From NCBI GenBank assembly GCA_965649825.1, contig OZ287708.1, positions 1-64,000 of the forward strand: a DNA stretch of 64,000 nt, written 5' to 3'. The position numbers were made by a program, and so were the translations under genes. Source of the DNA: Penicillus capitatus. Its lineage: Eukaryota > Plantae > Chlorophyta. Below are positions 17,613 through 52,799 of the stretch, in pieces. The notes beneath the pieces were generated by a model, which saw nothing but the letters and a program-made list of their open reading frames with translations, searched no databases and was not told where the DNA came from. The number at the start of each line of letters is the position of its first letter. The first letter of the stretch is position 1.

Positions 17613-18684
17613 ACAGCAGCAGGCTGGGACAGTACAGCCTCTAGACAGGAAACCGGCAGGTAGAACACGGCAGAGCTCAGGGCAACAAAACAGCAAGTAG
17701 AACTCGGCAGTCTCCGTCCAAAGTAAAGAAAGAACTATGACATACAAGCCTCGCAACTGCAAAATACCGAGTAGGATGCGGTAGCCTCCATGCAGCAACA
17801 CATCTCCGTTGAGCAAAACAGAAATAAAACGATCATAGCCTCTCCACAGAGCACACCAAATAGGATGCGGTAGCCTCCGTGCAGCTAGACAGCAGGTACG
17901 AACAAGACAGTCCAGTGGAGTGAAACAGAAAACAAAATGACCACAAATTCAAGGCAACAAAACAGCAAATGAGACATGAGACCATCCGAGCAGTTTAGCA
18001 GCTGAAAAGACATGGCATCATGCAGGCAGCAAGAGAGCAACTGGGACATGCCAGCCTCCGTGCAACAGCTCAGAAATCAGAACGATGCTAGCCTCCAGGC
18101 AGCAGATCAGAAATCAAGACGATATCATCCTCAGGGTAACAAAACAGCAGGTAGAACGATGCCAGCCATCGTACAGCAGATCAGAAATCACAGCAACGCC
18201 AGCCTCCAGACAGCGAGAGATCAGGTAAGACAACGCCAGCCTCCGTGCAGCAGATCAGAAATCAAAGCAAGGCCAGCCTCCGTGCAGCGAGACAGTAGGT
18301 CGGATCATGGCAACCTCCGGACAGCAAAACAGCAAACATGACAACGACAGCCTCCCACAGCAAATGACAGCAGGTAGAACCATGATAGCCTCCGGGCAGC
18401 AAAACAGCTAAAACAAGGCCAATCACAACAAAGCGAAGGTTGATGGCCAGAAAACAGGAAAAAACAAGAAAACAGCACCCTTTGGATCTTTTTGTTTTTT
18501 TTATTTTTTGATGTCACACTTCTAAGTGTGATGTTATTTATTTTTTTATTTTTTTAAATTTTTTGACATCTCACACAAAAAAGTGTGAGATGTATGAGAA
18601 ATAAAAATTTTTTGTACTTTTAATTTTTTCTGCCCCCGCCAAAAAAACAGCTGTCGAAAGGGAGAAGACATTGGGCCCCTCAAT

Positions 18685-29834: not shown

Positions 29835-30943
29835 GGTCGCTAAAGTCGGTCGCAGAAAACAAAGCGGAGGAACCCGAAACTCGAGTGCGGAAGGGTCAGC
29901 GACAGGACCTTTATAGGCCGCCTCGGTTGCTGCTCGCCGGCGGCCCGCGGAGGATGGGAACTGTGGCCGTTTGGCGGCGCCTGCATGCGCCGCCGGACAG
30001 AGATATGGCCGCCAGCGAGCCAGAATCGCAGGATTCTGTCGTCGGGACGCGCGACGCGGACGGGAGAGCGCTTTTGGATTCTCCGAGACGAGTTTTACAG
30101 GCAAGCCTGTCTGCAGTTTGTCGCTATGCTCTCGTCTGAGTGTAACACGAGACGCATCTCATGCGGCTGTTCGACGCAAATCTCCGAACGGCGAACCGTT
30201 CGGAGTCAGCCCGAAGTTGCCTGGCCGGAGCGGCGAGTAAGGCGTTCTGTTTTGCACAGGCAGCAAGGACTCGTCGTCGCGGCGGCCGTCTGTTTCGGAC
30301 GTTTTCGCTGCAGACGCCGTCGGGAGAGCGTTTTGCGAGGTGTAACCCGAGTCGGTTTGAGGAGTTGTCGGTGCCGCTAACTCCCTCGAACATGGAAGGC
30401 GCAACAGAACGACCGGCCTTCCGCGACGAGCAGACGACCACAGAGCCATTGTTCTAGTTCGTGTTCGCGCGCGGCGTCGCGTGTTTCGGAAGTCGCCGTT
30501 CGCTGTCATTAACGAATCCGGTCGCTTTCTATGTCGGCTGTGTAGGCCTGCTGCCTTTTCTACAAAGCCATCGATCTTACTGTTTCGAGAACGACGTGTA
30601 TGATGGCGCTGTCGATCACCGTCTGGGCCAGTTTCGATCCGATGCCATCGCCTACCTTCTTTCCGGTGTGCTCTACTGCGCGGAGTGCGCCAAAGATTCA
30701 GATTGTCATAGGAACTGGCTGGAATACCGCTGGATTCTCATTGGAATCGTCCTTGCAGTTCCATTCTTTGTGTCTCTGTGTTCTGAGACAATGAGAGGTC
30801 TGACGGAGAGCGTCCGTCTTCTGTTCGAAGGACACCTGTTGGAATTCTTTACAGCGAAACACGAGCAAATATCGCCAACTGCTCTGAGTGCGTGTGGCGT
30901 TCTATGACGATGTTGTCAGAGCTGGCGATGATCTCTTGTACGG

Positions 30944-31250
30944 TGTCGCGTAGGGTTTTAGATGGGAACAATTTGAGTGGTGGGCGCACGTAAACCTTTT
31001 TGAAACGTAAAGCCTTACAAACGAAAGACGAGATCTGTACATCGACAACGCTTTTATAGGGTACTTTATTTAAGGAACAAAGAAGGAATATTCTGAGAAG
31101 ATTCCGGAATCTACTTGGAATCTGTGACGTAGAGCCGCGGGTCTATTTGTGGATGGGAAGCTATAGAGAACCTACGACCTGTCACTTGGAGATCGACACA
31201 AGTGTAAGTAGATGAGCGCATTATCGTGAGCGCTACGCCTTAACACGACA
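30944..31250 (-). repeat. 3-prime LTR of element 1
   Basis: Direct repeat of 37584-37890. Confidence 0.95.
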
Positions 31251-31259
31251 TGGGCCCAC

Positions 31260-34200
31260 CTATCTTCTGCCTAATCTCCGAAGGAAGTCACGATGGACAT
31301 TGTGCAGCGTCGAACCATTGGGCATACGGATATCCCAACGGTGGTCACTATGTTCTTTCACTACCACACAAGGATAGACCCATTTGGAGTATAGTTTGGA
31401 GTCGAGGCGGTCGGCCAACTTTGAGTTGTACCACGAGACCTCTGCTCCCACTTCCATGGGACGGTTCTTGACTTTCTTGTGGTGTCTTGTCTTATTTTGC
31501 TGGTGTGCCTTGATTATTCGTTGATATGCTAGTCCTCGGTCGGTGTCTAACTGTTGTGGACTAGTTGTCGTGCCGTTCCGTTGTGTGCCAGTCAGAAGGT
31601 ATTGTGGACAGAACAGAGTCGTACTATGGATCGTCCGGTTGATCTCATGTACACTCGTGCTCACATGTGTCGTCCAATCACCCCCCTTTTCCGCCCATAT
31701 CCTCCGAAGTCGATTTACGAGGTTTCGGTTGAACGCCTCGACAGTGCCCGCACTTTTGTGGGAATAGGTTGGCGTATGTAGCAGATCTATTCCGTGCTGT
31801 GCGCAGGTACTCTCGAAGCTCCTGGCAATGAAGGCGCTTCCGTTGTCGCACAGGATCCTCTGTGGAGCCCCAAAGCTTCGTGCCCATTCGAGTACCAGCT
31901 TAATAGCCTGTGCTGCCGAGCACGTCTTACATGGGCGCCCCACGCCGAACTTAGTGAAAGCGTCGATCCCGGTAGCGATATACCGAAACCCATGGCTGCC
32001 ACGGTTCAGGGGTCCTATGAAGTCTAGACACAGTGTGTGGTTCGGGGATGGACTGTCAATCATACCCAAGTCCACCTCAGATCGTGGGTTGCGAAACATT
32101 TGGCACGTCTCGCAGTTATTGACGTAATCTCGCACGTCATTGAAGTCGTTCGTCCAGCGGGTTCCGTCGGACCGCAGGTTCAGGAATGTCTTCCTTACCC
32201 CGAAGTGGCCTGCATGAGCTTTCTTGATGAGCTCGGTCCGTTCTTCCGGAGCGTAGGATACGGCGTTCACTTGATATCCCTGTTGCTTCTTCTTGGTGTG
32301 AAATTCGACAGGTGCGTTGTCTCTCCATCGGCTGAGAAGATCCGCTATCACGTTGTCCTTCCCCTCTACAAAACAGAAGTGGAGACGATCGTGGGAAAAG
32401 TGGTGCCGGAGCCAGCAATGCTGTCTCTGGATCCGGAGGTCCTTGAACTTGTGCAGGAATGTCGGCTCCTTGAGCCAATTGACCGTAGCCATGTTGTCGG
32501 AGTAAACGAATACCTCCGTCTGCTTGATCACAAAGTAACATTCCTTCAAGGCCCGTACTATTCCCATCAATTCTCCCAGAAAACTTCCGACCCTCTGTTT
32601 CGTCGTAAAAGATCCAAAGAGAACAGGTTGCAAGGTCGAGTTAAGCAATACGTATCCGAACTGGTTGAGTGGGTTACCACACCAATCCGTATACAGATGG
32701 AATGGCCCCCTTCTTTCCAACGTCAATCGGTACGTACTGATGCACAGAGATTGAACTGCGTCCTTGTAGATCTCGTCAGCTTTGGTGTAGTCATTGTGTT
32801 CGCGTTTCAGGAATGGCTTGAGTTGCGTGACGATCGCGTCGTATTTGTAACAGTACTGTGCCAGTTGCTGGCACAGACCCATGGCCTTCTGAACGTCGTG
32901 ACGTGATGTGATTGTCGGCAGCTTCTGGAGTATTGCCTGGGCCCTGTGGTACGGGTTTAGCGTCCCACCACTGAGTTCGGTACCCAAAAAGCTTACCGAT
33001 GTCTCAAACCAGTCACACTTTTGGCAGTTGATCGTCAGGCCGTATTCGTCAAAACGTTTTAATAAAAGCTTGGTCTTGTCGAGGAGTTCCTCCTCCGTTT
33101 CGCCGCCGATAAGTATGTCATCGAAGTATCGGACCACATCCAACCCTTGTAGGATGTGTGGGTCATGCGGTTATTGAAAAGCTCCGGACTGACGTTGACG
33201 CCTTGCGGCAGTCTCCGAAAGCCGTACGTCACGCCGTTCCAATGTAGTGCAAAGAAAAGCGAGATATTGTCGTCGATGGGGATGGAGCCGTAGCCGTGAA
33301 CAATGTCCACGATGGTGTATACGGTCCACTTGGGATCCACCTTCTGGATGATGTTGGACACCGGAATGATGGTCCCCCCTTGCGTTCCTTCGAGGTACGT
33401 GTTGATGTCGCGGAAGTCAATGGTGGGCCGGATCTTGCCATTCGGTTTGCGTATGAAGTTTAAAGGTGCTACGACAGCGTGTATTGCTTCTGCAACAGAC
33501 AGCTGTCGTATAACACCTTCCATGTGTAGCGAGTCGATCTCTTTTGAGATTTCCTCATTGGTGAGATCTGAAACGTAGTTCTCCCTCCAGCATGGCTTAG
33601 GCTCGCCTTGCCAACAAAGATCTCTGCCGCGTACCCTGATGTCCCACAGCCTGTTGGTCGTCGGGCGAATTGTGTCCGAAAACACCCGAGGGAATTCTTC
33701 TCTCAACTGAGCTACTGTCGTATCCTTGTCCAGTGTTGTAAGGACGCTAACGTTATGCACGCGCTTGGTCTTCTCTCTCAGCGGGTATTCCGTTCCATCG
33801 ACGTCGGCGATGGAATCAATGTTTCCTTTAGCACAACACAGTCGCATCTTGCTGGTGACGTGTTGTGGGGTATCGGATTGATTGAAGATTACCACGCTGA
33901 TTTGACCATTTGCGTGTACCTTCACCTTGCAGAAGATGTTCTTGTTATGGGTACAGTCAAAGAATGCAGTCCAAATTGTTGTTTCCGAGAACTTGAAAGG
34001 TAAGATAATGCGGCGGCTCCGAAAGGGTCCCAGCACAAAACTTCTCCCTGCCATAAAGACGATCCAGCCGTTTTGTTTGAACGGGAATAGCTCCCGATCA
34101 ATGGATTCCGTGACTTGAAGTGCTAAAGATGTTGGTCTTTCTTTCTGTCTGTCTTGGGGTGTCTCGTCCTTCCAGTTCGCCTTTACTAGTACCAAGCGTT

Positions 34201-34264
34201 TTATTTGCGGTTTTTGCGAGTCGTCATCTGCCTGCTGAAAAACAGGCGTGCACCTTAGTTTTTT
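31260..34264 (-). CDS. pol: Pol of element 1: dUTPase-like + RT + RNase H + integrase. Reached by -1 frameshift; RT interrupted by a 2-nt insertion at ~33155-33160
   Basis: PLNFIRKPNGKIRPTIDFRDIN, DIVHGYG, LPQG, YFDD, RNase H LYTDW..EL..DN..NVIADLLSR, integrase H-H-C-C (AHAGHFG..CETC), LDFIGP, CDNG, VEAFN. ACCCACACATCC should read ACC CAC ATC to join MTH to ILQGLDVVRYFDD. Confidence 0.93.
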
Positions 34265-37200
34265 GAAACTGAGACGTTGTGGATCAAGATTTTGTTGCCT
34301 TTGTCGTCGTAGACTGCGTCCTCCTCGCAGTTGAGCTGCAACTTGAATGCTTGAAGGGCCTGCATTCCCAGAATCGGGCGTTGGACACCTTCACAGACGA
34401 CAAATGGAATCTCAGCGCTCTGTTTCCCGAGGGTACACACCAAAGCGATCTCGCCACTTGGCCTGGTCGTCTGGTTGTTGAAGCTGGTTACATCTCTAAC
34501 CTTCGACGACCTGAGGACCAAGTTGTGTCTCCTTGCCAGCTTTGCCGGAAGTATATTGGTCTGCGCACCGGTGTCCAACAGGCACGAGATTTTTCCGGCA
34601 ATATTCTCCATGTTGAGTGGGACATTATACTGTATCATCCTCTGAGAATTCTGGCGCTGTACCGGATTCGCTTGTCCTAAAGTCCCCGATTCTGTCGTCT
34701 TTGGGGCTTTCGCGAGTACAGGACAGTCTCTACCGGAGTGGCCTTTTTTATTGCATCTCTCGCAGGTGTGTCCGTACTCTTGTCGCACGCCTTGCTTGTC
34801 GTTGTTGGGAGCGTTGCTTCGTGTATTCCGTCCTCCGTGTAAGCATTCGTCGATGATCCTTTGTACACGTGGCCAGTTGCCCGCATCTCCCCATGGCAGT
34901 CCACGCAGACGTGCCTGGATTTGTGCGTTCGCAATATTGAAGATTCTCTCCGTCGCCGTAGCGTACTTGACGGGGTCATCTATCAATTCGAGCAGCTTTG
35001 ACATTCTGCGTGTGAACTGCGAGAGATTCTCTTTACGTTTTGGCAACATCCTGTGTACGTTCTTTACGGTGGGACCATCTTTCTCGACGTGTCTAGTGGG
35101 AGTCTGGCTTTTTGGAGTGTGTGGAGTTGCAGCTTCACTAGGGCGACGCTTGTCTGAGTCCTGACGTATTTGTTGACTCTGTTTCCGTTCGGTTGTTCCT
35201 TGGGTCTCGTGCGATGGCTCAGGCTCGGGGTGATGTAACTCACATCCGACTTGCTGCACTCGCATCCGATCCTCAACCGCTTCTACTCGTTGCCCGATAG
35301 TAAGTATGCTGGCCTCCACAACCTCTTCCAATCTCCCTTGTCTATTGACAAGTCTGTCCTCGAGTTCTGCAGCGCGTCTCATAAGCCCATCTTGCATCGC
35401 TTGAACACTTTCCATCAAGGATTGTATCAAGCCACGTTGTTCAGTGTCTTGGCGGACTTCCGGCGATGGGTCTGGGTGGATTTCCGTCACTGTATTTTGT
35501 TGGTCTGCCCGTCGTGGTGCCGAATGTTGCGGTGGCGGAGGCGACTGAGATGGCGCGACAGGACGAGAAGGACTGGATGACGGCGTTGACTCCTGCGGCG
35601 GTGACTGGGATGGCGGCGGTGGCGACTGTTGTGTAGGCGTTGGTGGTGACTGCTCTTGTGACGACTGCTGAGTGGTCAGTTCTTGAGTCAGTTGCTGCGC
35701 CTGAGCCCTATGTCCCCGCATCAGATTCCACACGATTCTGAGTAACCAGCAAATCCCCTGGGTTATGGCTACGACTCGCATCACAACCTTGCGGATGTTC
35801 CTGAATACATTCAAGATCCATGCAGCGACCTTGTATAGAAGCATAGCAGCGCCTACCAACTGCCAGCCGTTCCCCGTCGCCAGGGCACTACGAATTGCTC
35901 TGAGTCCAAATTTATCCCAAAGCGTGCCTAACATCCACGTGACCGCGTTATCTCGGGCACCGGTTAGCCATTTTATGAAACGGTCGAGGAATGTTTCATT
36001 CTCATGACTGTTTCCCCAACCTGTAACTTGACTCTCGCATATGCACTCGTCGAGGGCCGTCTTCAGATTTCCCGTATGTTCGTTGATTCTATATATTGTC
36101 TTCCTAATCTCGTCCAGGGTGTCGTTGAGCCGTTTCCAATCATCATTTAAACCTTTCGGGCCCCATGCGTCTTGGGAGTCCTGTTGGCCTTGAGAGTTCG
36201 TTGATGAACCGCTCATCGAGATGTTCTCGAACTGGTTCAAATCGTACAATGACTCATTGAAGGCCTTCAGTTCTCCCTCGATTTTCGGCCTGGATGGAAG
36301 GTTGTTGATGACTGAAACTGTGACAGTCGTCAATAGATTAGTCGGATAGAAGACGGAGAGTACCCCTCTGTTTGCTACCCAATTGATGACTCCGTGAGTG
36401 GTAAGGCCCACGACGGCGCTAGTCATCATCTCCGTTACGTAGTCCGGCCATGTGATATCCAAGTCTCTCATCCAAACGGGGATCGCGGCCCAAGGTTCTC
36501 TAGCGTCGAGAGGTAGAGCATTCCCTAATCCGTGCATGTCAAATACATTCTCTGGGGGAAGCTCCTGTTCGGGTCCTTGGCCTTCCTCTGACTGCGTATC
36601 TTCAACTTCAGGCTCGGATTGTGGGGTAGCCGTGTCTTCGTACGTATCCTGCTGTGCTTCGGCTGGTATTGCGTACACGAAATCTAATGCTCCGGGCTCG
36701 GTCCCGACATACAGGTCATCATATTCATCTTCCAGATACGCATCGACTGATTCGACAATCTCATCAATTTCGTCCGAGTACGTCGCTTTAGATCTCTCTT
36801 CTGGTTGTTCCTTTCCGGTTGATATGCGCTCTCCGGCAGAGAGTCCACTTTGATCTTCGGGGTCGGCTACGGGTATAGCGTATCCGAAGCGTCTGCGCAG
36901 AGCTCTCGCCGACGACATTACGGTGAAATCGTTCTTGCCGTTTCGAGGGTCTCCGTATGTCAGATCGTATACTCTCTGTCTGGACGTGTCCAGAAGTTCC
37001 TTCTGGCCCCAATTCTCAGGATGGGGTTCACCTCGGACGAGTAGAAAAAGTGAGATGTCGGTCGTTGATATTGGTCGCCCGTCCCAGTAGATCCTGGCGC
37101 CTTCGCTCAGAACCTTGATCAGCATGTTGGTTTCGCCCATGGATAGTCCCCCTGCCGCATCATAAAAGATAATGCCTTTGGGGCAACCGATGACGAATTC

Positions 37201-37584
37201 TGCGATCTCCTTCTGTATCATTCCGGCGTCGACCGAATAGTCACCCGGGGTTTTGATGTACAGAAGGCAACCTCCCTTGTGCAGATCTGGTTCCTTCCTG
37301 ATTTCGTTAGTCAGCGAGTCACATTTCCCTGTGGTACAGTATAGAATTGTGGACGTCGCTTTTTCTTGAAACAGGACAGGTTCCTTTGTATTCAAGTCGT
37401 GGGCGAGGTTAACGATGTATCCATCAATCCAGTCTTCGCCACTGCGGACGTTGTTCTGGATGCTTGTTAGAGTTTTATTCCGTAACTCTACTATTCCATC
37501 CTTCCAGCCGAACCATGCGCCGTGCGTGACGGCGGCATAGCATAGAACCCACAACAGCATTGGGAGCACTCGCTCCGAAACCAT
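34255..37584 (-). CDS. gag-pro: ORF1 of element 1: signal peptide - AAA+-like ectodomain - acidic linker - coiled coil - TM - Pro-rich - Gag CA-like - CCHC knuckle - aspartic protease (start at ATG 37584 or 37560)
   Basis: MLLWVLCYAAVTHGA leader, TM WQLVGAAMLLYKVAAWILNVF, MHR-like KRKENLSQFTRRMSKLL, CERCNKKGHSGRDC, LLDTGAQ; ends VSKN* on A-AAA-AAC. Confidence 0.9.
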   Translation of the reverse strand: MVSERVLPMLLWVLCYAAVTHGAWFGWKDGIVELRNKTLTSIQNNVRSGEDWIDGYIVNLAHDLNTKEPVLFQEKATSTILYCTTGKCDSLTNEIRKEPDLHKGGCLLYIKTPGDYSVDAGMIQKEIAEFVIGCPKGIIFYDAAGGLSMGETNMLIKVLSEGARIYWDGRPISTTDISLFLLVRGEPHPENWGQKELLDTSRQRVYDLTYGDPRNGKNDFTVMSSARALRRRFGYAIPVADPEDQSGLSAGERISTGKEQPEERSKATYSDEIDEIVESVDAYLEDEYDDLYVGTEPGALDFVYAIPAEAQQDTYEDTATPQSEPEVEDTQSEEGQGPEQELPPENVFDMHGLGNALPLDAREPWAAIPVWMRDLDITWPDYVTEMMTSAVVGLTTHGVINWVANRGVLSVFYPTNLLTTVTVSVINNLPSRPKIEGELKAFNESLYDLNQFENISMSGSSTNSQGQQDSQDAWGPKGLNDDWKRLNDTLDEIRKTIYRINEHTGNLKTALDECICESQVTGWGNSHENETFLDRFIKWLTGARDNAVTWMLGTLWDKFGLRAIRSALATGNGWQLVGAAMLLYKVAAWILNVFRNIRKVVMRVVAITQGICWLLRIVWNLMRGHRAQAQQLTQELTTQQSSQEQSPPTPTQQSPPPPSQSPPQESTPSSSPSRPVAPSQSPPPPQHSAPRRADQQNTVTEIHPDPSPEVRQDTEQRGLIQSLMESVQAMQDGLMRRAAELEDRLVNRQGRLEEVVEASILTIGQRVEAVEDRMRVQQVGCELHHPEPEPSHETQGTTERKQSQQIRQDSDKRRPSEAATPHTPKSQTPTRHVEKDGPTVKNVHRMLPKRKENLSQFTRRMSKLLELIDDPVKYATATERIFNIANAQIQARLRGLPWGDAGNWPRVQRIIDECLHGGRNTRSNAPNNDKQGVRQEYGHTCERCNKKGHSGRDCPVLAKAPKTTESGTLGQANPVQRQNSQRMIQYNVPLNMENIAGKISCLLDTGAQTNILPAKLARRHNLVLRSSKVRDVTSFNNQTTRPSGEIALVCTLGKQSAEIPFVVCEGVQRPILGMQALQAFKLQLNCEEDAVYDDKGNKILIHNVSVSKN
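37569..37583 (-). promoter_or_regulatory. Primer binding site TGGTTTCGGAGCGAG of element 1
   Basis: Abuts the 5-prime LTR; identical to the element 2 PBS at 47550-47564. Confidence 0.8.
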
Positions 37585-37890
37585 GTCGCGTAGGGTTTTA
37601 GATGGGAACAATTTGAGTGGTGGGCGCACGTAAACCTTTTTGAAACGTAAAGCCTAACAAACGAAAGACGAGATCTGTACATCGACAACGCTTTTATAGG
37701 GTACTTTATTTAAGGAACAAAGAAGGAATATTCTGAGAAGATTCCGGAATCTACTTGGAATCTGTGACGTAGAGCCGCGGGTCTATTTGTGGATGGGAAG
37801 CTATAGAGAACCTACGACCTGTCACTTGGAGATCGACACAAGTGTAAGTAGATGAGCGCATTATCGTGAGCGCTACGCCTTAACACGACA
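37584..37890 (-). repeat. 5-prime LTR of element 1
   Basis: Direct repeat of 30944-31250, followed by an extra CGACA (37891-37895). Confidence 0.95.
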
Positions 37891-38601
37891 CGACAACGGT
37901 AAGCGCGTTGAGGAATGCATGTACGAGACCGTTGATCGTCGGCTCCTGGCTTTGCCAGTTGGACTGGCGATTTGGCATTCCTCACCGAACACCGAGTGAG
38001 ATACATGTCAACATCGACGTGCGGGACCGAGTCCAATAGATGCATTGCATTCACAGAACAAGGCATTCTTAGATGATAGTGTGAGAAAACATACATTGGG
38101 TGATGAGCTCTGTGGACTGTAAAACGATCTCAGATGAGCGAGAATGTGTCTGTTCACGATGAATTGGAGTGTCAGCAGACACTGTCTGTCGCGTATGGCA
38201 ACTTTACCTGGCAGGCAAGGAGTGATTGCAGAGCTGATGGCCACAATCAATGAACCGTTGAGTGGAAAATCGAAGAGTTGCGGCATACTCTACGATGGTA
38301 GGCACACAAGACGTCATAGCAGGTCGTACAGTAAGTGCTTAGTATGTTAATCCTTGATTCCCGACGAAAACACTGCAGTGTGTGCGGATGCCAGACGGGT
38401 GTCATCGCTGTCGGTTACAGGGTAACAGACGACCAGCTTCTTCAAACGATGAGTGCCTGCGTCGGTTGGCGATGTATCATACCGTCGTACGGTGAAGGGC
38501 AATGAAAAGTAAGTGATAGGCAGCTTCCTACACGAATGCTATAAAACCCTGCGGTCGCCTTCTCTTTAGCGTAACAACTGTCCATCGCTCGACACTCGAA
38601 G

Positions 38602-40821
38602 ATGTGTCCGACCCACCGTCTACTCTATGTGCTTTTCATTGCGCTAACGGCTTGGTTTCCGGCTCGGGCACAGCCAAGCACAAACATACCACGCTCAATC
38701 CAGGAAGTCATCGCGGAGAAAGAGAATTTCATTCGCGGCTTCGCGAAGTACGCAGAAAGCCTCTACGCGCAGAGAGAGGAGGTCGTCGAGACATGTCAGT
38801 GCGCAAAGCACGCTTGTTCGGACGATTTTGGCGACGTCGAATGCGTCGATTTCTTTGGACAGCATCCCGAGTGCGACTTACCGCACCGCCATATCGACCG
38901 CACGAAGTCGGTCTGTCGAACTCCGCCGAACATCCCAATGGACGAACTGGGTCCGTGGCTTAAAGAGAGCATCTGCGTTTACCAGAATATCACGGGATAC
39001 GTGCAAGAAGCGTGTGGACCGGAATGCAAGTCGATGTACGTCGGTATGTCTCACTCTCCGCCGCGCCGAGGTCACTCTTTTGTCTTAGGCACGAAAGATG
39101 GACACTTTACCATATATCCCGGAAGGGCCCGCGAACGCTACCCCAAAAGCAAATGGAGTGACACGCACGTCTGCGAGGAATACGACCCGCGCAAGCGTCC
39201 GTGGTATGTGGGGGCAAGCACCGGTCCAAAAGACATTGTTCTCGTTCTCGATGTCTCAGGATCCATGGGTGAGCCCATTGACCTGGAAAACAACCCCAAA
39301 TGGGATCTGGTAAAGAGAGCAGCGAGCGAAACGCTTGACACCTTGACCGTGGCTGACCATGTGAATGTGGTGCTCTTCTCCGACGACGCCAAGGTCCTCT
39401 GGACAGAATCTGGACTCGCCAGAGCCCTTTCGGAGAACATCGATAAAATCAAGATGCAGCTGGAGGAAGTGCAGCCAGCGAACAACACGAATTTCACGGC
39501 GGCATTCGAAGCAGCTTTCCCTCTGTTGTGGCGCAACTGTGACGAGGAACCTCCTCCGTGCTCAAAGTGTGAGAAGATTGTGCTCTTCCTGACGGATGGG
39601 CGAGACACGTCCAGAAGACGCGATGAGAGTATCAAACCATCAAAGATGGCTGAAGTGATCGAGGGACTGCAGACGAAACTGGAGAAAGAGACGGGCAAAA
39701 GATCGGCCATCTTCACGTTCTCCATGTCAGAAGACGCCGACGATGCCATTCCACGCCAAATCGCCTGCGCCAACAGCGGAGCGTGGGCATACGTCGGTCC
39801 CAGAACAAACCCGCTGGATTCTCTGCTTTCGTACTACCTGTACACATCCGCCGGGCTGCGCGGCATCTCCCCCGTATGGATTGAGCCTTACGAAGACGCA
39901 AGCGGTTTGGGGATCGTGACGACGGTGGCCCTGCCGATATACGCACGAGGAACAGAGCAGGAACACGACGTCTTCTTGGGCGTCGTCGGGCACCAGGTCC
40001 TCTTGGACGAACTCGTCGGAGAGCACGTCAGTCTGGATGATGTTCTTCACGAACTGATTAAAAGGACAAGAGATTGCCCGTACTCAGTCGAAACGCCATG
40101 CGAGCTCCAAGTCTACCGACACGCTCGCGACGACCGAGCACTCTGTACAGACGCTTTACCCGCGAACGAGACCATTGAAGCCGAGGATGACGAAGTGCGT
40201 TCGGATGAGGATGATGCGACTCGGAATAGTTGCTACGTGTTTAGAAACGACTACTACAGAAGGTCACTCGAAAAGGTTTCATGGAAAGAGGCCGTTTCCA
40301 AATGCGAGGATCATGGAGGTGAGTTGGTCAGCATTGACGATGTCGAAGAGCTTGGCTTCGTCAGTCGAGTCGCATCGATCGACGGATCGTGGGTCGGTGC
40401 TAATAAGGACGGCTATGAAGTTTTTTCTTGGATCGATGATCGACTGCCCCTCCTCGGAAACAATTCCAGTTACTGGGGCGTTCAGGAGCCGATCTTTCAG
40501 ATGGGAAACGAAGAGTGTGCTGCCATCGACACAAGAGGCATTGTTGGAAACATGCACGCCAAGAGTTGTGACAAGAGACTGTCCTACATCTGCAAGTTCA
40601 GATCGGAGGGGCCCTGTGGAGAGAATATTGGCACTATGCCAGACACAGGCTACTTCACAATCCCGCATCTCGGCGCCTGCATTGATATCTCCAACGCGCT
40701 GGAATCGACGCGTCCGCTTTCTCAAGCAAAGAACCTCAGGTCCAGAGAAGTCGTGTGCAGGTTTGGACCCTCAGGAGCAGGAAACGAAGAGGTTATTTGC
40801 TGCGACGGCACTGGCAAGTAG
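38602..40821 (+). CDS. Secreted alpha2delta/CACHD1-like Cache-VWA protein with a C-terminal C-type lectin domain (probable in-frame 45-nt intron 39044-39088)
   Basis: Signal peptide. YDPRKRPWY preceding VWA KDIVLVLDVSGS (MIDAS), LFLTDG, WIEPYEDASGLG. CTL motifs SWKEAVSKC..GGELVSI..E, WVG, EECAAI, C..RLSYICK. Confidence 0.85.
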   Translation: MCPTHRLLYVLFIALTAWFPARAQPSTNIPRSIQEVIAEKENFIRGFAKYAESLYAQREEVVETCQCAKHACSDDFGDVECVDFFGQHPECDLPHRHIDRTKSVCRTPPNIPMDELGPWLKESICVYQNITGYVQEACGPECKSMYVGMSHSPPRRGHSFVLGTKDGHFTIYPGRARERYPKSKWSDTHVCEEYDPRKRPWYVGASTGPKDIVLVLDVSGSMGEPIDLENNPKWDLVKRAASETLDTLTVADHVNVVLFSDDAKVLWTESGLARALSENIDKIKMQLEEVQPANNTNFTAAFEAAFPLLWRNCDEEPPPCSKCEKIVLFLTDGRDTSRRRDESIKPSKMAEVIEGLQTKLEKETGKRSAIFTFSMSEDADDAIPRQIACANSGAWAYVGPRTNPLDSLLSYYLYTSAGLRGISPVWIEPYEDASGLGIVTTVALPIYARGTEQEHDVFLGVVGHQVLLDELVGEHVSLDDVLHELIKRTRDCPYSVETPCELQVYRHARDDRALCTDALPANETIEAEDDEVRSDEDDATRNSCYVFRNDYYRRSLEKVSWKEAVSKCEDHGGELVSIDDVEELGFVSRVASIDGSWVGANKDGYEVFSWIDDRLPLLGNNSSYWGVQEPIFQMGNEECAAIDTRGIVGNMHAKSCDKRLSYICKFRSEGPCGENIGTMPDTGYFTIPHLGACIDISNALESTRPLSQAKNLRSREVVCRFGPSGAGNEEVICCDGTGK

Positions 40822-44442: not shown

Positions 44443-47161
44443 CTAAGCAGACTTCGATTTCTGCGATCTACGAGACGGATCGGCAATCACAGGGATCCTG
44501 CCTTGCGGTTCCAATGAGACACGCGACGTCTCATTTCTTGAGGCCGCTCCGTTGTTGTTCTCTTCGAGCGGCTCTGTCGGTGGACGCTCAGCCTCGCGCC
44601 CGTGTTCATCTATGGTGTTCAGCGGCACGGTTTCTGGGTGCATTTGTGCCGCCTGCAGTGCGGTCTGCAGTTTCTTCTTGCTTCGTAGACGCGACAGGCG
44701 GAACTTCGAAACGCCGATGGCCACCGTCGCGGCCGTGGTGAGCCTGGTCTCGGCGGCGGAGTGATGAAAGGGATGAGAACCGTTTGCGATGTGCTGCAGG
44801 GCAGTCTTCCCTCTCCGATTGACGCCCTGTTTGCTCCGGCGGCGCTGCAAGTGCGGATCCGGGCCGCCGGTCCTGGACCTCTGGCGCAGCGCATCCGCCT
44901 CCGCCTTCATGTCGGCGGTCTCGATCAGCTCGCTCACGAAGCTCAGGAAGAACTCGCGTTCCTCCGACGTCGCCATCGCCAGCCACTGAGCGAGCGGCGC
45001 GTAGTCCCTCCAGTTCACCACGTGCATGAGAGGCAGCGGCTCGACCTTCTTCGAGAGGTAGAAGTTTCGGTAGAGATTCGTGGCGAAGTCGTTGAACGCG
45101 TCCCGACTGTCCTGATCGGCCACGGCGAGGAAATCGACCAGCTGGGGGAACTGGTCGACCAGTCTCCTCCAGAACCTAGCCACGGGATCCGTGGACAGGT
45201 ACGACGTCTCTGAGTTGTCCGCCACGTAGTCCTTGAGCATGTCGGTCAGGCGATCCCAGTCCTTGATGTGTTCCGGATTCCTCTGCAGGCAGCGGTAGAC
45301 GAACCCGGGCCTGAACTTGTCCAGAAGCTCGAAGCTGACGGTCTTGTCCGCGTCCCTCGACCGGACCGTCTCCAGCACGACCTGCGTGACGGCGTTGTTG
45401 ATGACGGTCGAGACCAGCTGCGATCCGATGCCGTCGCCTTCCTTCTTTCCGGCGAAGCACCGATGGCGCTTCTTCAGGGACACGGTGTAGCACTTGTTGG
45501 TGATCTCGGCGGCGAAGATCATGGCGAAGACGACGACCAGCATCAGAGACGTGATCAGGACCAGCCATTCGAGAATCTCCCGGTTCGCATCCGGAAGGTT
45601 CTCGCTGTAGAACATCAGTCCGCCGAACGCCTCGAACAGCAGCGCCACCAGCAGGAAACTGAAGAGGACGTCGAGGTAGGTGTTGACGTAGGGCGCCGTG
45701 TAGATGTGGACCATCAGAGAGGCGTTGATGATCACCGAGATCGCTCCCACCTGGAAGGCGGGATTGTTGACGTAGACCAGCACCAAGACGAAGAGCAGCT
45801 TTCTGAGGATGTCGATGGCCGGAGTGAAGTAGTAATCCAGCTCGTACTTCTCGTAGATGAATCCGTACCTGCGGAGCTGCACGGGATCCACGAAGCCGCC
45901 CTGGGAACGCAGACAGTAGAGCTTCCAGCCGACGAACGCCGGGTAGCCGACGACGAAGACGAGGATGCCCACGATTGCCAGGACGACGGTCTTCATGTGC
46001 TCCTCGTCGCAGACGACGCTCGGATCCGCCCGCAGCACGGAGACGGACGCGACGTTCGTGCACTTGAACACGTCGAAGCAGTACTTGGCGACGGTGATGT
46101 AGGTGGTGTCCACCGATGCCAGCAGCGTCGCGATGGTCGCGTCCCACTTCTGCACGAGCTGCGCGTCGTCCTCGGGGAGGTGCACGAAGAAAGACACCAG
46201 CCGCCTCTTCCGCCCCTCCAGTTTGACCCACCGGTGCTTGTGCAGCACGTAGGCGAGAGCCGATCCCAGATAGCCGCTGCAGCCCATGATCGTCATCAGG
46301 AAGGGAAGCCCCAGCTGCAGCAGGAATCTCTGCCTGAATCCCCACCGAGCGCTGCAGGACGGCTGCATGATGTCCACATCGAAGTCCAGAAGACTGGCCA
46401 GGCCGAACAGCGTGACCACCATGTCCGTCCACTTCAGGTGGATGTCGCCGATGACGTTGGCCAGCTGCGCCCAGTGCAGGACGATCTCGAGCGACGCCAC
46501 GTTTCGCGACACGACGACGTTGATCATGTACCACACCAGCAGCAGGAAGGTGAAGGCGGCTGCAACGCCTGCCGAGTTTCGGCACGGATAGCACTTCTGA
46601 ATGACGCGGAAGTAGCCGTCGGCGCACTCCGAACACAACCTACAGCGCGGATCCGGACGACGGACGGAAACCGTGTGCTGCCCCACCTGCCCATGTGCCC
46701 CTCCTGACAGTCTCTGCCCGGTCCTCCGACGCAGCTGCTGGGAGGATCGCAGCTGTACACTTCGTTTCGCTGGAGATCTCCGGTCCAGTAACCTTCCTGC
46801 GGAACCGGCAGCCGCATTCCGCCTTCGCACGTCGCTCCCTCGGGACACGGCTCGCACGCCGTGCCCGGTTTCGTCTGGCGGTTCACGTAACCCTGCCTGC
46901 ACACACATTCCTCTACGTCCCTGGCTCCGCGGACGGTTGTCGTCGTTCCCTCCGGACAAGGCCTGCACGCCTTCTGCGCCAGCTGATCCGACCACGTCCC
47001 GATCGGGCAGTTGTCGCAGTGATCGGCGTCGACCTGATCCGAAAACTCTCCCCGCGTGCAGGCCTCGCAGGGGTCGAACGGATCCGGGCCGACATACGAG
47101 CCTGGCATGCACTTCTCCCTGTAGCGGTTCCTCGCCGGATAGTTCAGCAACTCGGTGGCGT
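44443..47161 (-). pseudogene. Receptor-like gene copy 2, 3-prime part (Cys-rich repeats + ~9 TM + cytoplasmic tail), separated from its 5-prime part by LTR element 2
   Basis: Near-identical to positions 1-1830; intron 46640-46686; complete C-terminal ORF ending at 44443. Confidence 0.85.
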
Positions 47162-47547
47162 TGTCGCCAAGATCTGGCTTGGCGATGTGACTGCCCAGAG
47201 GGTCACATCGCTTAAAACGGAGAAAAACCCTGGGTCTGTGAACCTTTGTAAGCCTTTTGCGTTCTGCGTTACGTGCGTGTGTAAGCGAAATCCATCCTGG
47301 ATAACGACGAAGCGCAACCGCCTTCGCGTGCAGTTGTTCCTTACCCTCCTTTGTACCAAAACACGCCATATCTGTCGGCGCTAGCGTTCTTCAGACAAGC
47401 GGAACGTGGGAGCTCTGACGTGACCGAGTCCATAGCGCAGGACGGTACCCAAGTCGACGATCGACTGGTCCATCCTGTGGAGGCAGGACCAACCGACGCA
47501 GAAGCCGACGAAGAAGCACCACGAAGGGAATTATCCCAAGAGCGACA
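47162..47547 (+). repeat. 5-prime LTR of element 2
   Basis: Direct repeat of 52414-52799. Confidence 0.95.
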
Positions 47548-47593
47548 AGTGGTTTCGGAGCGAGGCTACGGCGAAGTAGAAGGGGTAGACAAG

Positions 47594-49411
47594 ATGCAGC
47601 AAAAAGCCTGGCTGTGTCTCTTTGCGTTGTTTTACCTTCTTGTCTCTGCGGCAATAATCGCGGGACACGCGGAGAATTCAACAGAGAAGGAAAGGTCGGA
47701 GAAGGAGCTCCAAGATGAGTTTAAGGAATCAGGGGCAACATTGGCTGACTTGTTACAAAGGATCAAAGCCTTAGAAAAGGAAGCGGCCGAGTTCAGGGCA
47801 GAAGCTCGGAGGGAGAGGGCCGCACGGATACAGCTGAATGAGGAGGTGCAAATACTTAGGAAGGAAAATGAGCGCCTTCGAGATCGGATGGAAGCGGAGA
47901 TTATTAACGAGGTGCTTGAGGAGGGGCAAAAATTACGTTTGGAGGCCACGAGGACATGGTGGGAGTGGCTGACGGGGACGGCTCCCCCGGGCGTGGAGGT
48001 GGAGAGAACGACCACGATCGAGGGTTGCCAAGATTTGAAGTGTTGCTTTGGAATGTGGTGGACGACCGTGGGAGAACTATTCCATCAAACAACGGATCTT
48101 ATTTATCGATTCGTGTGGGATCCATATGGCACTGGAGGCCACTGGGCATCGGGTCTGTTTAGCGCCGGCTTCTGGGGACCGGTGCTCGGAATAACGATCC
48201 TAGTGGTGGTGGTGAATCTCCTACTGCTGGCTGTCTTCCGAGCGGCTGATATATGGAAGGGAATGAAGGGGCTGGCCAGTAGGTTGGGAGGGCTGCCCAT
48301 GTTTAAGCTCGTGGGTATGGCCTTCTCGAAGCTGCGAAGGGGAGAGGGGCCAGAGGGGACCTCCCCTGAACTCCAGGAGATGCGAAGGACCGTAGAAAAG
48401 CTTCAGAAGACCGTGGAGACGAGTCAGCGGAAGGGAAAGGAGCAACGGGAGATGAGGGAGCTCCGTGGGCAGGTGGAGAACCTCATGGCCAAGTGCGAGC
48501 AACAGGCGCCTCCAGGAGAGGATGTGCAGACGAAGACCGTGAGAGAGATGCAGGCATTTTTCCAGCAGCAACTCGATCAGCTACGAAGGGAGTTCATACA
48601 TACGGGGAAGCAACCAGGACCTGCACCGATCCCGGTGGATATGTCTCCCCGTCGGAGGCAGAATCCTGGTTCAATGCCACCAGGGGGGAGGCAACGCTAC
48701 TGTGAGCGCTGCAAGAAATGGCATCCGGGACTTGAGTGCTGGGATTGCACCAAGTGCAGAACGTGTGGTGCAACAGGAATGTGCGAACACCGGGCAAAGA
48801 TCGTGGAGAACAACCGAAGACGATCCCCTACTCCCAGGCCGGAGAGGACGAGAGCTGTGGCGGTATGTGAGCGGGAGGAGTCTGAAGCGATGTGGGATTG
48901 GGACGCGAGGTTAGTGGAGGAGGCATCGCAAACGGGATCTTCAATCTCCTTCTCGACGAAAGGGGAGGGAAGTGGAGAACCGGGCACACAAGAGTCGGTC
49001 GTTGCGGTGGTGGACAAAGAGGCTAAGGGATACCGTCTGCGAGGACACTTGGCTGTGGGAGGAGGGGTAGCTCCTTGCACGTTCCTTATCGACACTGGCT
49101 CGGAAGTGAATTTGCTGAGTGAGAAGACGTGCACGCGCCTAGGAGTGGGTATTCAGTCGGCAGGACCTGACAAGCCAAACTTGGCAGGGGTGTCCGGAGA
49201 GCGGTTAGAGGTGACGGGGCAGGCGATCTTAGAGACTCGGTTTGGTCAAGAGGAGGGGAAGGCGATTCGTTATTGGGTCGCGAAGAACGTAAGAGACATA
49301 ATTGGGATTCCTGGAATAGGGCAGCTGGGGATTTCATTGACGAACCCGGGTCACATGGCAGTGTTTCCCTCGGGGCAGAAACTTTTTTGTCAGGTGGTGC
49401 AAAAAAACTAA
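47594..49411 (+). CDS. gag-pro: ORF1 of element 2: signal peptide - coiled coil - Trp-rich segment - TM - coiled coil - Cys/His Zn finger - aspartic protease
   Basis: MQQKAWLCLFALFYLLVSAAIIAGHA leader, TRTWWEWLTG, TM GPVLGITILVVVVNLLLLAVF, CERCKKWHPGLECWDCTKCRTCGATGMCEH, FLIDTGSEVN; ends VQKN* on A-AAA-AAC. Confidence 0.9.
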   Translation: MQQKAWLCLFALFYLLVSAAIIAGHAENSTEKERSEKELQDEFKESGATLADLLQRIKALEKEAAEFRAEARRERAARIQLNEEVQILRKENERLRDRMEAEIINEVLEEGQKLRLEATRTWWEWLTGTAPPGVEVERTTTIEGCQDLKCCFGMWWTTVGELFHQTTDLIYRFVWDPYGTGGHWASGLFSAGFWGPVLGITILVVVVNLLLLAVFRAADIWKGMKGLASRLGGLPMFKLVGMAFSKLRRGEGPEGTSPELQEMRRTVEKLQKTVETSQRKGKEQREMRELRGQVENLMAKCEQQAPPGEDVQTKTVREMQAFFQQQLDQLRREFIHTGKQPGPAPIPVDMSPRRRQNPGSMPPGGRQRYCERCKKWHPGLECWDCTKCRTCGATGMCEHRAKIVENNRRRSPTPRPERTRAVAVCEREESEAMWDWDARLVEEASQTGSSISFSTKGEGSGEPGTQESVVAVVDKEAKGYRLRGHLAVGGGVAPCTFLIDTGSEVNLLSEKTCTRLGVGIQSAGPDKPNLAGVSGERLEVTGQAILETRFGQEEGKAIRYWVAKNVRDIIGIPGIGQLGISLTNPGHMAVFPSGQKLFCQVVQKN

Positions 49412-49437
49412 AGGGCTCTCCCGCGCAGACGGGAGAG
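49402..49437 (+). promoter_or_regulatory. -1 ribosomal frameshift signal: A-AAA-AAC + 7-nt spacer + 8-bp hairpin
   Basis: Heptamer 49402-49408; CTCTCCCG-cgcaga-CGGGAGAG at 49416-49437; the -1 frame continues KKLKGSPAQ. Confidence 0.85.
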
Positions 49438-52383: not shown

Positions 52384-52413
52384 GGTGATCGTCAGAGTTG
52401 GCGGGAAGCGTGG

Positions 52414-52799
52414 TGTCGCCAAGATCTGGCTTGGCGATGTGACTGCCCAGAGGGTCACATCGCTTAAAACGGAGAAAAACCCTGGGTCTGTGAACCTTTG
52501 TAAGCCTTTTGCGTTCTGCGTTACGTGCGTGTGTAAGCGAAATCCATCCTGGATAACGACGAAGCGCAACCGCCTTCGCGTGCAGTTGTTCCTTACCCTC
52601 CTTTGTACCAAAACACGCCATATCTGTCGGCGCTAGCGTTCTTCAGACAAGCGGAACGTGGGAGCTCTGACGTGACCGAGTCCATAGCGCAGGACGGTAC
52701 CCAAGTCGACGATCGACTGGTCCATCCTGTGGAGGCAGGACCAACCGACGCAGAAGCCGACGAAGAAGCACCACGAAGGGAATTATCCCAAGAGCGACA
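52414..52799 (+). repeat. 3-prime LTR of element 2
   Basis: Direct repeat of 47162-47547. Confidence 0.95.

Follow-up and report, generated by a model that had tools for sequence, protein, structure and literature searches.

A Ty3/gypsy-order retroelement of Penicillus capitatus with a degenerate Clp/torsin-clade AAA+-like domain fused to a predicted membrane-anchored Gag

Described systems and the element in Penicillus capitatus

Chromodomains and env genes are known acquisitions of LTR retroelements. Searches of the literature brought up no membrane-anchored Gag fused to a luminal pseudo-ATPase of the Clp/torsin clade. Among cellular proteins, the luminal domains of LAP1 (TOR1AIP1) and LULL1 (TOR1AIP2), which activate torsin ATPases in animals, have been described as nucleotide-free AAA+-like domains that lack a small domain and carry a disulfide and an arginine finger (PMC4358337, PMC4999309), and torsins are stated to occur in neither plants nor single-celled organisms (PMC4358337, PMC7175109). 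Among LTR retrotransposons, the sORF2 of the MDG1 group encodes a FAST-like membrane protein upstream of gag (bioRxiv 10.1101/2025.03.14.642691 = PMC11952523).

The window analysed here, 64,000 nucleotides of Penicillus capitatus contig OZ287708.1 (assembly GCA_965649825.1), contains element 1, a complete LTR retroelement with Ty3/gypsy gene order (30944..37890, minus strand, like all features of element 1 below), which was delimited by its LTRs, target-site duplication, empty site and domains. Its two LTRs are 307 bp long and 99.7% identical. The 5' LTR (37584..37890) has TG...CA ends and carries a TATA-like ctataaaag and ends on the A of the ORF1 ATG, and the primer-binding-site position directly after it (tggtttcgg...) is overlapped by the coding sequence of the leader. 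A purine-rich tract (~31255-31270) lies immediately upstream of the 3' LTR (30944..31250). The target-site duplication CCGT flanks the element at 30940-30943 and 37896-37899; the five extra bases at 37891-37895 (tgtcg) repeat the start of the LTR. An empty paralogous copy of the site, at ~21118-21121, continues without interruption (...gCCGTacaagag...). The first-pass annotation, made from the letters of the window, had called this an LTR retrotransposon, and the LTRs, the duplication and the order protease-RT-RNase H-integrase bear that out. Its Ty3/gypsy-order membership follows from these features together with the TG..CA ends, the primer-binding-site and polypurine-tract positions and the CCHC-bearing Gag, and places the element at the level of gene order. 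Element 1 is a young, recently inserted Ty3/gypsy-order LTR retroelement.

ORF1 (34255..37584) is intact over 1109 aa from first ATG to stop, within an open frame of 1124 codons (34255..37629) whose first ATG, at 37584, is the start that had been proposed; the three peptides quoted earlier all occur in the translation of 36844-37584 on the minus strand. The polyprotein is arranged as a leader, a globular domain of ~218 aa, an acidic linker, a second, helical ectodomain bearing glycosylation sites, a transmembrane segment (TM), a P/Q/S-rich stretch, a coiled-coil/gag-like region, a CCHC knuckle and an aspartic protease, and this architecture is also intact in two relatives (P0024 and P0026). 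The predicted cytoplasmic part (34780..35709) consists of the P/Q/S-rich stretch (aa 626-700) followed by a coiled coil and a conserved gag-like region (aa 701-935); dN/dS in the gag-like part is 0.17-0.28 (0.21 against copy L002), and no capsid family or fold was detected there in Pfam and PDB searches. The zinc knuckle (34723..34764; Pfam zf-CCHC, E = 0.0085, with the Cys/His pattern read in the sequence) and the retropepsin-type protease with LLDTGA (34333..34614; gag-asp_proteas, E = 4.7e-7) share one open frame with the globular domain, as expected of the Gag-polyprotein fusion that had been claimed. The pol frame (RT, RNase H and integrase; 31260..34390) lies at -1 and overlaps the end of ORF1; in element 1 it is broken by one frameshift, and in the relatives it is uninterrupted over 942-977 codons. 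A second element in the same window, element 2, has a leader, a coiled coil, a Cys cluster and a TM ahead of its knuckles and protease, and no AAA+ domain.

Fold, degeneracy and relatives of the AAA+-like domain

The globular domain (aa 23-240; 36865..37518) was identified by profile, AlphaFold and Foldseek searches as AAA+-like, comprising only a large subdomain of the Clp-D2/torsin clade. Relatives gathered from a library of 1.8 billion proteins match at E = 1.6e-24 down to 1e-4, and, with the ORF intact, a chance resemblance was rejected. In PDB searches with profiles of 7 and 12 family members, human CLPB/Skd3 was matched at E = 3.3e-5 and 7.7e-6, respectively, and the D2 domains of ClpC, ClpB and ClpA were also matched, from the Walker-B strand to the sensor-1 strand. 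An AlphaFold model built from an 11-sequence alignment (pLDDT 76, pTM 0.77, core blocks 86-93) returned 180 Foldseek matches in the PDB at E <= 1e-3, headed by ClpC, ClpB-D2, Skd3 and the TorsinA filament 6oif (E = 3e-7 to 4e-6; 6oif at rank 10 with 3.7e-6), with query TM-scores of 0.45-0.55 to the Clp D2/TorsinA matches. A Micractinium homologue matches Pfam AAA_2 (E = 9.6e-5), and a viral library search with the domain gave generic Clp/AAA+ matches only. The CLPB profile match and the Foldseek result agree with the AAA+ fold first proposed, and on this profile and model evidence the domain is assigned to the Clp-D2/torsin (Clp/Hsp100-D2, HCLR) clade. With the Clp/Hsp100 D2 domains (ClpB, ClpC, ClpA, CLPB/Skd3) and TorsinA, which provide its best profile and fold matches, it shares the Walker-B strand, the beta-hairpin, the sensor-1 strand and an Arg preceding the last core strand, whereas it differs from them in lacking a P-loop, catalytic Glu, lid and sensor 2, and in being predicted luminal and fused to Gag.

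The loss of nucleotide motifs extends over the family, as judged from column counts in an alignment of mostly 11 members (12 for one Cys column). The P-loop is replaced by a Cys-x4-6-Cys loop, which is Cys-x4-Cys in element 1, where, in the model, TTGKC lies in the loop that joins the first core strand to the next helix. The Walker-A Lys column holds Lys in 3 of 11 members, the residue being absent even in copies related at 98% and 57%, so that the earlier description of TTGKC as a decayed Walker A at the P-loop position holds. At Walker B, the Asp column has D in 3 of 11 members and the Glu column has E in none of the 11, and no relative keeps the Asp-Glu pair. Element 1 has D-A at this place (hhhhDA) and the algal members have R-R or N-R; alignment with the CLPB profile puts D142 on the Asp and A143 on the Glu, matching the replacement of Glu by Ala that had been read from the sequence. 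No lid (small) domain or sensor 2 was found, as neither the model nor the family alignment extends more than a few residues past the last core strand. Because the P-loop has given way to a short Cys-flanked loop, and the Walker-B acidic pair and the lid are missing, the domain is predicted to be ATP-dead, unable to bind or hydrolyse ATP. An active ATPase, that is, a true torsin or Clp homologue, can draw on the AAA+ fold and on the 'GK' dipeptide at the P-loop position of element 1, and is nonetheless hardly credible in the face of a loop of 4-6 residues between two Cys, a Lys kept by so few members, a Walker-B Glu present in none, and the missing lid and sensor 2.

What the family retains is three near-invariant Cys columns (12/12, 11/11 and 10/11) at and next to the P-loop position, together with Pro238 (11/11) and Arg232 (10/11), with no single Arg column invariant. 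The RRR at aa 230-232 corresponds to model residues 208-210, between a helix (198-208) and a strand (213-217), and by its secondary-structure position this Arg cluster would occupy the arginine-finger place of Clp-type and classical AAA+ proteins.

The domain had been labelled torsin/LAP1-like, which is right as to a degenerate fold of the Clp-D2/torsin clade and does not extend to homology with the LAP1, LULL1 or torsin families by Pfam or PDB profile. No match to Torsin or LAP1C was obtained in Pfam searches, no torsin, LAP1 or LULL1 chain appeared at E <= 10 in the PDB profile searches, and LAP1 and LULL1 were absent from the best 50 of the 180 Foldseek matches. Membership of the torsin family was rejected, given the lack of a sequence match and the combination of lost nucleotide motifs, missing small domain and conserved Arg cluster, which is the opposite of what torsins have. 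The likeness to LAP1 and LULL1 is instead one of design: an extracytoplasmic (here predicted) AAA+-like large subdomain without Walker A, functional Walker B or small domain (PMC4358337, PMC4999309), with conserved cysteines and a conserved arginine at the arginine-finger position (here by secondary-structure position). Here, however, the cysteines flank the remnant of the P-loop, whereas those of LAP1 join helix alpha1 to the C-terminus; a cleavable-looking leader stands at the N-terminus of a polyprotein, where LAP1 and LULL1 have a type-II anchor; and the organisms concerned have no described torsin. As neither the sequence searches nor the 50 best fold matches brought up LAP1/LULL1, a LAP1-like function of the element domain can be suggested only at the level of design.

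The AAA+-like domain is cellular-derived and was captured by the retroelement. Its homologues include a stand-alone cellular protein (P0005), with a leader or signal anchor and a non-TE context, and proteins of Chlorella and Micractinium (Chlorellaceae) that carry a SAP domain (E = 1e-5 to 7e-4), which is of a kind that binds chromatin/DNA, one TM and one or two copies of the domain. These algal homologues resemble LAP1 in having a nucleoplasm-type N-terminal domain (SAP), one TM and a predicted luminal domain. Among the elements, the domain has a dN/dS of 0.25-0.29 at dS about 1.1 (0.29 against copy L002), and is under purifying selection; even a lineage at only 32% identity (P0003) retains it. 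Retroelements pick up host fragments, and no close cellular donor was found in the databases searched (best cellular identity 24%), as would suit a host exon captured by chance and carried without function. Such a passenger is already disfavoured, and is very improbable, in view of the low dN/dS at saturating dS, the retention of the domain in lineages down to that 32% and the motif columns shared with cellular homologues.

The membrane module ahead of Gag

The hydrophobic leader (aa 1-22; 37519..37584) probably acts as a signal peptide, positions -3/-1 being occupied by small residues. Its 66 nt are identical to those of copy L002, though the rest of ORF1 has dS > 1, and its hydrophobic character is preserved in diverged copies; from this conservation and its composition we infer that it is probably cleaved. 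Downstream of the AAA+-like domain, an acidic low-complexity linker (aa 241-360; 36505..36864), defined by composition and without a family match, leads to a second ectodomain (aa 361-575; 35860..36504) of Env-TM-like layout, which contains four sequons, a hydrophobic stretch, a long predicted helix with C-x-C at its end and, close to the membrane, a Trp-rich stretch. No Pfam or PDB match, and none to any viral glycoprotein, was found for this second ectodomain, and its AlphaFold model has a pLDDT of 38. The membrane region (35719..35859) comprises the TM (aa 576-596; nt 35797-35859), which is the strongest hydrophobic segment of ORF1, a basic RNIRK and a second, amphipathic hydrophobic segment (aa 600-622). 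All five N-x-S/T sequons (residues 36, 443, 454, 487 and 529) precede the TM; three of the five are invariant in relatives 57-68% identical there, and N36 is kept wherever the N-terminus is present.

The leader, the five sequons N-terminal of the TM and the RNIRK after it point to a luminal setting, and the ORF1 product is predicted to be an ER-targeted type-I membrane glycoprotein fused to Gag and protease. An extracytoplasmic setting of the AAA+-like domain is supported by its consistency throughout, from the leaders of the elements and the leader or signal anchor of the stand-alone homologue to the post-SAP TM of the algal proteins. The first-pass annotation had rightly counted five sequons between leader and TM, the latter placed at 35800-35865, and had described a fusion to Gag. 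The shared frame stands; some 330 further residues of linker, second ectodomain and TM between the AAA+-like domain and Gag had been overlooked. Because of these extra residues, with their acidic linker, Cys-pair/Trp-rich ectodomain and TM, the N-terminal 620 aa resemble a glycoprotein module of Env-like type and not a simple decoration of Gag.

This layout brings in a serious rival explanation, in which the N-terminal ~620 aa would be a surface glycoprotein upstream of Gag, the AAA+ domain its distal 'SU-like' head, there only to bind a receptor or to oligomerise, and aa 361-596 the fusion/anchor subunit, with no AAA+ partner. It is possible, though we regard it as somewhat unlikely. The succession of leader, head, linker, hydrophobic stretch, long helix with C-x-C, Trp-rich stretch, TM and basic residues inside fits it, as do the conserved ectodomain sequons and the absence of an env downstream of pol in any copy, where the LTR directly follows pol; element 2, moreover, has a membrane module without an AAA+ domain, so that the module stands alone and the AAA+ domain looks like an add-on. 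However, there is no polybasic cleavage site before the hydrophobic stretch, the second ectodomain has neither Pfam nor PDB similarity to viral glycoproteins nor a confident model, and the Arg cluster and Cys columns are common to cellular, non-viral homologues, which points to a conserved cellular interaction and not to a lineage-specific receptor contact. The Env proteins of errantiviruses and retroviruses share with this module a leader, a glycosylated ectodomain (sequons here), a helix with a Cys motif after it, an aromatic stretch close to the membrane and a TM; the module differs in lying 5' of and fused to gag rather than 3' of pol, in having no furin-type site and in matching no such family or fold. 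On the lack of a family or PDB match and on this position, it was not assigned to retroviral or errantiviral Env. The MDG1 sORF2 is likewise a membrane protein 5' of gag in a Ty3/gypsy-type element without a downstream env, but it is a separate ORF of ~70 aa without a folded ectodomain (PMC11952523), whereas element 1 has an ectodomain of ~575 aa and a TM in frame with Gag-Pro, including the pseudo-AAA+ domain.

The fusion could also be functionless, if processing by a protease of the element or host, or internal initiation after the TM, yielded a free luminal or secreted pseudo-AAA+ protein and a cytosolic Gag-Pro. In favour of this, cleavage is the norm for retroelement polyproteins, several invariant Met codons lie downstream of the TM, and the linker and P/Q/S-rich stretches are disordered-looking and fast-evolving (31-48% identity). 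Yet three full-length copies, each with near-identical LTRs, keep the whole fused frame uninterrupted at dS > 1, the leader's ATG is the only one close to the 5' end of the transcript, and no cleavage site can be named from the sequence. We consider such separate products distinctly improbable, and they overlap with the explanation preferred below as regards the role of the domain itself.

A possible luminal role and its meaning

The explanation that we prefer, tentatively and with less than even confidence, is that a dead AAA+ ectodomain on a membrane-anchored Gag-Pro serves as a luminal docking or oligomerising pseudo-ATPase of LAP1/LULL1 design. The leader would send the chain to the ER, with the AAA+-like domain as its first folded unit, which would come to lie within the ER/perinuclear lumen or on the outer face of a budded particle. 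There the domain may bind a luminal AAA+ partner, in line with the first-pass suggestion that it could engage host luminal AAA+ machinery, or may pair with its cellular homologue or with another copy of itself. Such pairing would bring the membrane-anchored Gag-Pro(-Pol) to ER/nuclear-envelope membranes and may help to remodel them. We infer the partner, and a role in budding or membrane passage, from this arrangement. Several points stand against it: the missing sequence, profile and top-50 fold links to the LAP1, LULL1 and torsin proteins set out above; Cys positions unlike the helix-to-C-terminus disulfide of LAP1; the lack of an invariant Arg column, with arginine-finger equivalence judged by secondary-structure position; a second ectodomain and TM that suggest an Env-like function needing no AAA+ partner; and a 'Gag' part in which no capsid fold was detected. 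The presumed partner may also be missing in the host, because torsins are reported in the literature to be missing outside animals.

A bolder form of the preferred explanation, which we regard as a long shot, would have a retroelement lineage capture a LAP1/LULL1-type activator domain and thereby tap an undescribed, non-animal luminal AAA+ membrane-remodelling system for budding or passage at the ER/nuclear envelope. In that case the algal SAP-TM-pseudo-AAA+ proteins would belong to the system as its cellular components at the inner nuclear membrane, and this would amount to a torsin-activator-like system outside Metazoa.

The search around this element has exposed a small cellular family with the design of LAP1 in organisms said to lack the torsin system, made up of the SAP-TM-domain proteins of Chlorella and Micractinium and a stand-alone predicted luminal protein. 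If the parallel with LAP1 is functional, these proteins and the element would offer a handle on luminal-side remodelling of the nuclear envelope in non-animal eukaryotes, and on the way in which capsid-forming elements pass through internal membranes or bud there. If it is not, the domain would still be a clear example of an ATPase fold put to new use as the head of an Env-like module, and would also show that membrane-anchored Gag is common in this genome, because element 2 has one too.

Element 1 and the anatomy of ORF1

Element 1 (window 30944-37890, minus strand) is a complete LTR retroelement whose 307 bp direct repeats (30944-31250 and 37584-37890, minus strand) are 99.7% identical, have TG...CA ends and carry a CCGT duplication on both sides. 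Elsewhere in the window, a diverged paralogous copy of the host DNA is uninterrupted at the insertion point (~21118-21121), and because this paralogous site runs straight through, the insertion is regarded as clean and recent. Five bases, tgtcg, which are also the first five of the LTR, separate the 5' LTR from the target-site duplication (window 37891-37895) and are missing before the 3' LTR. ORF1 lies within an open frame at 34255..37629 (minus strand), with its first ATG at 37584, and Pfam places a CCHC knuckle and a retropepsin at its C-terminal end and reverse transcriptase, RNase H and integrase, the Ty3/gypsy order, in the frame that follows. Pol opens in the -1 frame before ORF1 has ended, in element 1 as in two related copies. 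The pol of element 1 is interrupted by one frameshift and ORF1 is intact, while the pol of the relatives is a single unbroken frame of 942-977 codons. In three full-length copies the 3' LTR follows pol with no other ORF in between, and no tRNA gene among those in the window or the related loci matches the primer-binding site.

The protein begins with a hydrophobic leader that has small residues at -3/-1 (aa 1-22), followed by the globular domain (aa 23-240), an acidic linker (aa 241-360) and a second ectodomain (aa 361-575) with a hydrophobic stretch, four sequons, a predicted long helix running to a C-x-C, and a Trp-rich membrane-proximal stretch. The strongest hydrophobic segment, taken as the transmembrane segment (TM, aa 576-596), leads into RNIRK and a second, amphipathic hydrophobic segment (aa 600-622), after which come a P/Q/S-rich region (aa 626-700), a coiled coil with a conserved gag-like stretch of no recognisable capsid family (aa 701-935), the CCHC knuckle (aa 940-955) and the protease (about aa 991-1084). 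The linker, second ectodomain, gag-like part and AAA+ part had no Pfam match at E <= 10, whether the window protein or its pieces were searched, and a profile from four full ORF1 proteins found no capsid or glycoprotein in the PDB. An AlphaFold model of aa 355-625 from a 4-sequence alignment reached a pLDDT of 38 and did not resolve a fold.

The ATG of ORF1 takes its A from the final base of the 5' LTR and its TG from the two bases that open the primer-binding-site position, so that the leader-coding sequence overlaps this position. These 66 nt (window 37519-37584) are identical to those of L002, a related locus with a copy of the element, though dS exceeds 1 in the rest of ORF1; the stretch is therefore presumably under an extra constraint at the RNA or DNA level. 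Where the leader sequence has changed, as in the relatives P0003, P0004 and P0011, its hydrophobicity is kept.

A degenerate AAA+ fold

The first-pass annotation had proposed that this Gag carries a torsin/LAP1-like degenerate AAA+ domain, and the three peptides it quoted were all found in ORF1 aa 1-241 on the minus strand. Its core structural claim holds on three independent lines of evidence. HMMER, run exhaustively on 1.84 billion representatives, gave just 11 relatives, and the domain family is for this reason considered rare. Family profiles matched the nucleotide-binding domain of human CLPB/Skd3 in the PDB (E = 3.3e-5 with 7 members and 7.7e-6 with 12), over a span from the Walker-B strand to the sensor-1 strand, and the same profiles gave weaker matches to the D2 modules (second AAA+ modules) of ClpC, ClpB and ClpA. 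A homologue from Micractinium matched Pfam AAA_2 just below threshold (E = 9.6e-5). The AlphaFold model built from 11 sequences had a pLDDT of 76, with 86-93 in the core, and a pTM of 0.77, and Foldseek placed it against 180 PDB matches at E <= 1e-3, with ClpC, ClpB-D2 and Skd3 at the top and the TorsinA filament tenth (E = 3.7e-6); the viral structure library returned generic Clp/AAA+ proteins only. A GH6 match over the leader in a single-sequence PDB search (E = 0.04) was dismissed as chance, Clp being reached by family profiles alone. The domain is thus confirmed, at the level of profiles and a predicted model, as a degenerate AAA+ large subdomain of the Clp-D2/torsin clade.

The decay of the nucleotide site, claimed by the first-pass annotation for both Walker motifs, was borne out. 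At the P-loop position of the model, which separates the first core strand from the helix after it, there is a 4-residue loop, TTGK, between two Cys that are kept in 12/12 and 11/11 family members; a third Cys, on the next strand, is kept in 10/11. The Lys of this loop is present in 3/11 members and is gone even in copies related at 98% and 57%. In the alignment to CLPB, D142 falls on the Walker-B Asp column and A143 on that of the catalytic Glu, a residue that no family member has, the algal members reading R-R or N-R. Both model and family alignment have the domain stopping a few residues past the last core strand, so there is no lid domain and no sensor 2. An active ATPase is disfavoured and was rejected on these features, and the domain is, as judged from sequence and model, a predicted pseudo-ATPase.

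In Clp-type and classical AAA+ members the arginine finger lies at the end of the helix before the last strand. The motif A-L-R-R-R-[IF]-x-x-x-x-P (R232 in 10/11 members, P238 in 11/11) sits at the end of the helix preceding the last strand in the model. Within the window, tblastn of ORF1 found no second copy of the domain, the only repeat being the first 19, LTR-encoded codons.

Likeness to LAP1/LULL1 and cellular relatives

The animal torsin activators LAP1 and LULL1 have luminal AAA+-like domains strikingly similar to ClpB-D2, which lack Walker A and the small domain, have a Walker B without acidic residues (hhhhHR) and a conserved disulfide blocking the pocket, and give an arginine finger to torsin, which is itself without one (Sosa et al. 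PMC4358337; Demircioglu et al. PMC4999309). At the level of design the domain family shares these features, with the luminal location predicted, a disulfide putative and the Arg-finger position given by secondary structure; its Cys positions differ from those of LAP1/LULL1. Pfam LAP1C and Torsin gave no match, profile searches of the PDB found no LAP1, LULL1 or torsin chain at E <= 10, and LAP1/LULL1 were absent among the Foldseek PDB matches listed. Of the torsin/LAP1 likeness first proposed, the design and the TorsinA fold match thus stand, while membership of the LAP1/LULL1 family is not supported. Torsins and their cofactors are reported to occur in animals, as opposed to single-celled organisms or plants (PMC4358337, PMC7175109). 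The domain family is therefore either related, though very distantly, or a Clp-D2-type module that decayed independently to the same design. In a limited literature search no retroelement carrying a domain of this kind turned up; the closest precedent was the small FAST-like sORF2, which MDG1-group elements encode upstream of gag.

A cellular origin of the domain is confirmed. A 273-aa relative, P0005, comes from a stand-alone gene and has a leader or signal anchor; on its JGI metagenome contig, ordinary cellular genes lie on both sides. Another, P0010 (Chlorella ohadii KAI7844878.1), carries the UniRef name 'SAP domain-containing protein' and has relatives in C. sorokiniana, C. vulgaris and Micractinium. 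In these relatives a SAP domain at the N-terminus (E = 1e-5 to 7e-4) is followed by a basic stretch, one strong TM and 1-2 copies of the domain. This layout matches the build of LAP1, in which a chromatin/DNA-binding N-terminus and a TM precede an AAA+-like domain that is luminal and nucleotide-free.

Between the window and L002 (dS 1.1), dN/dS was 0.29 for the domain, 0.21 for the gag-like part and 0.13 for the knuckle-protease part, and a second pair gave 0.25 for the domain. The entire fused frame is kept in three full-length copies with near-identical LTRs from the same ENA assembly (ERZ25074695), and in P0003, a distant lineage (32% identical), the domain stands behind a leader of the same type. 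A passenger fragment, carried along without function, is disfavoured and was rejected on the purifying dN/dS, the keeping of the domain down to that lineage and the motif columns in common with cellular homologues; a chance ORF was rejected too, the frame being intact and having relatives. By these sequence comparisons, the domain appears to be used, not just carried. A locus search of JGI metagenome contigs with the window domain gave no relative.

Several observations concern the copies themselves. Window ORF1 is a mosaic relative to L003 6001-9429, a second related locus, with the second ectodomain 97% identical (dS 0.02) and the knuckle-protease part 72% (dS 1.9), which suggests recombination between element lineages. 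P0003 and P0015 (ENA contigs of 1.2-1.8 Mb), from the distant lineage at 32% identity, have the AAA+-like domain fused straight to the pol integrase part, as the result of an internal deletion in the copy. The related copy in L002 adjoins the host RNA polymerase II largest subunit (L002 1-2228), which was called as a single unbroken 1656-aa gene with a degenerate YSPTSP-type heptad tail at its end; the surrounding genes are intron-poor.

Predicted membrane anchoring and a possible role

Element 2, an unrelated LTR retroelement (window 47162-52799, plus strand; 386-bp LTRs, 100% identical), has an ORF1 (47351-49411) in which a hydrophobic leader, a coiled coil, a cluster of Cys and a strong TM precede two zinc knuckles and a protease, and which has no AAA+-like domain. 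BLASTP similarity between the ORF1 proteins of the two elements is confined to knuckle and protease. The paralogous unbroken site of element 2 is at about window 1829-1836; such empty-site comparisons are possible because both elements lie inside host units of ~10 kb, duplicated in tandem or segmentally and diverged to 75-96% identity (window 9200-30950 and 60200-62900; also 1-8173 vs 45327-47165 plus 52800-59165). One host repeat unit contains a short near-perfect tandem duplication (window 17422-17616; ~58-87-nt offsets, 99% identical). The host gene adjoining element 1 (window 38602-40821, plus strand) encodes a leader-bearing protein with von Willebrand A and C-type lectin domains, and other neighbours (window 1196-3226 and 44443-47112) encode ANF-receptor/Ephrin-receptor-like and TRP-like domains.

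All indirect signs in the sequences point to a luminal domain. The five sequons named in the first-pass annotation all lie N-terminal to the TM, and three sequons are invariant among copies just 57-68% identical across that part. The main rival reading, that the N-terminal 620 aa are an Env-like glycoprotein with a recycled AAA+ fold as its head, draws on element 2, where a membrane module without the AAA+ domain suggests that this module is a unit of its own; we consider it somewhat less likely than the docking model below. Processing of the ORF1 frame into products of which some are luminal and others cytosolic is less likely still.

As a whole, a leader-targeted, TM-anchored Gag-Pro with a docking pseudo-AAA+ domain is put forward tentatively. 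The leader would bring the nascent polyprotein into the ER, where the pseudo-AAA+ domain and second ectodomain would be luminal and glycosylated, and the TM would keep Gag-Pro, plus Pol after frameshifting, on the side facing the cytosol or nucleoplasm. Gag anchored in a membrane seems to recur in the source genome. In element 1, the Arg face of the pseudo-AAA+ domain may dock on a luminal AAA+ partner, on the domain's cellular homologue or on the domain itself, and this docking would gather anchored Gag at ER or nuclear-envelope membranes and aid their remodelling.
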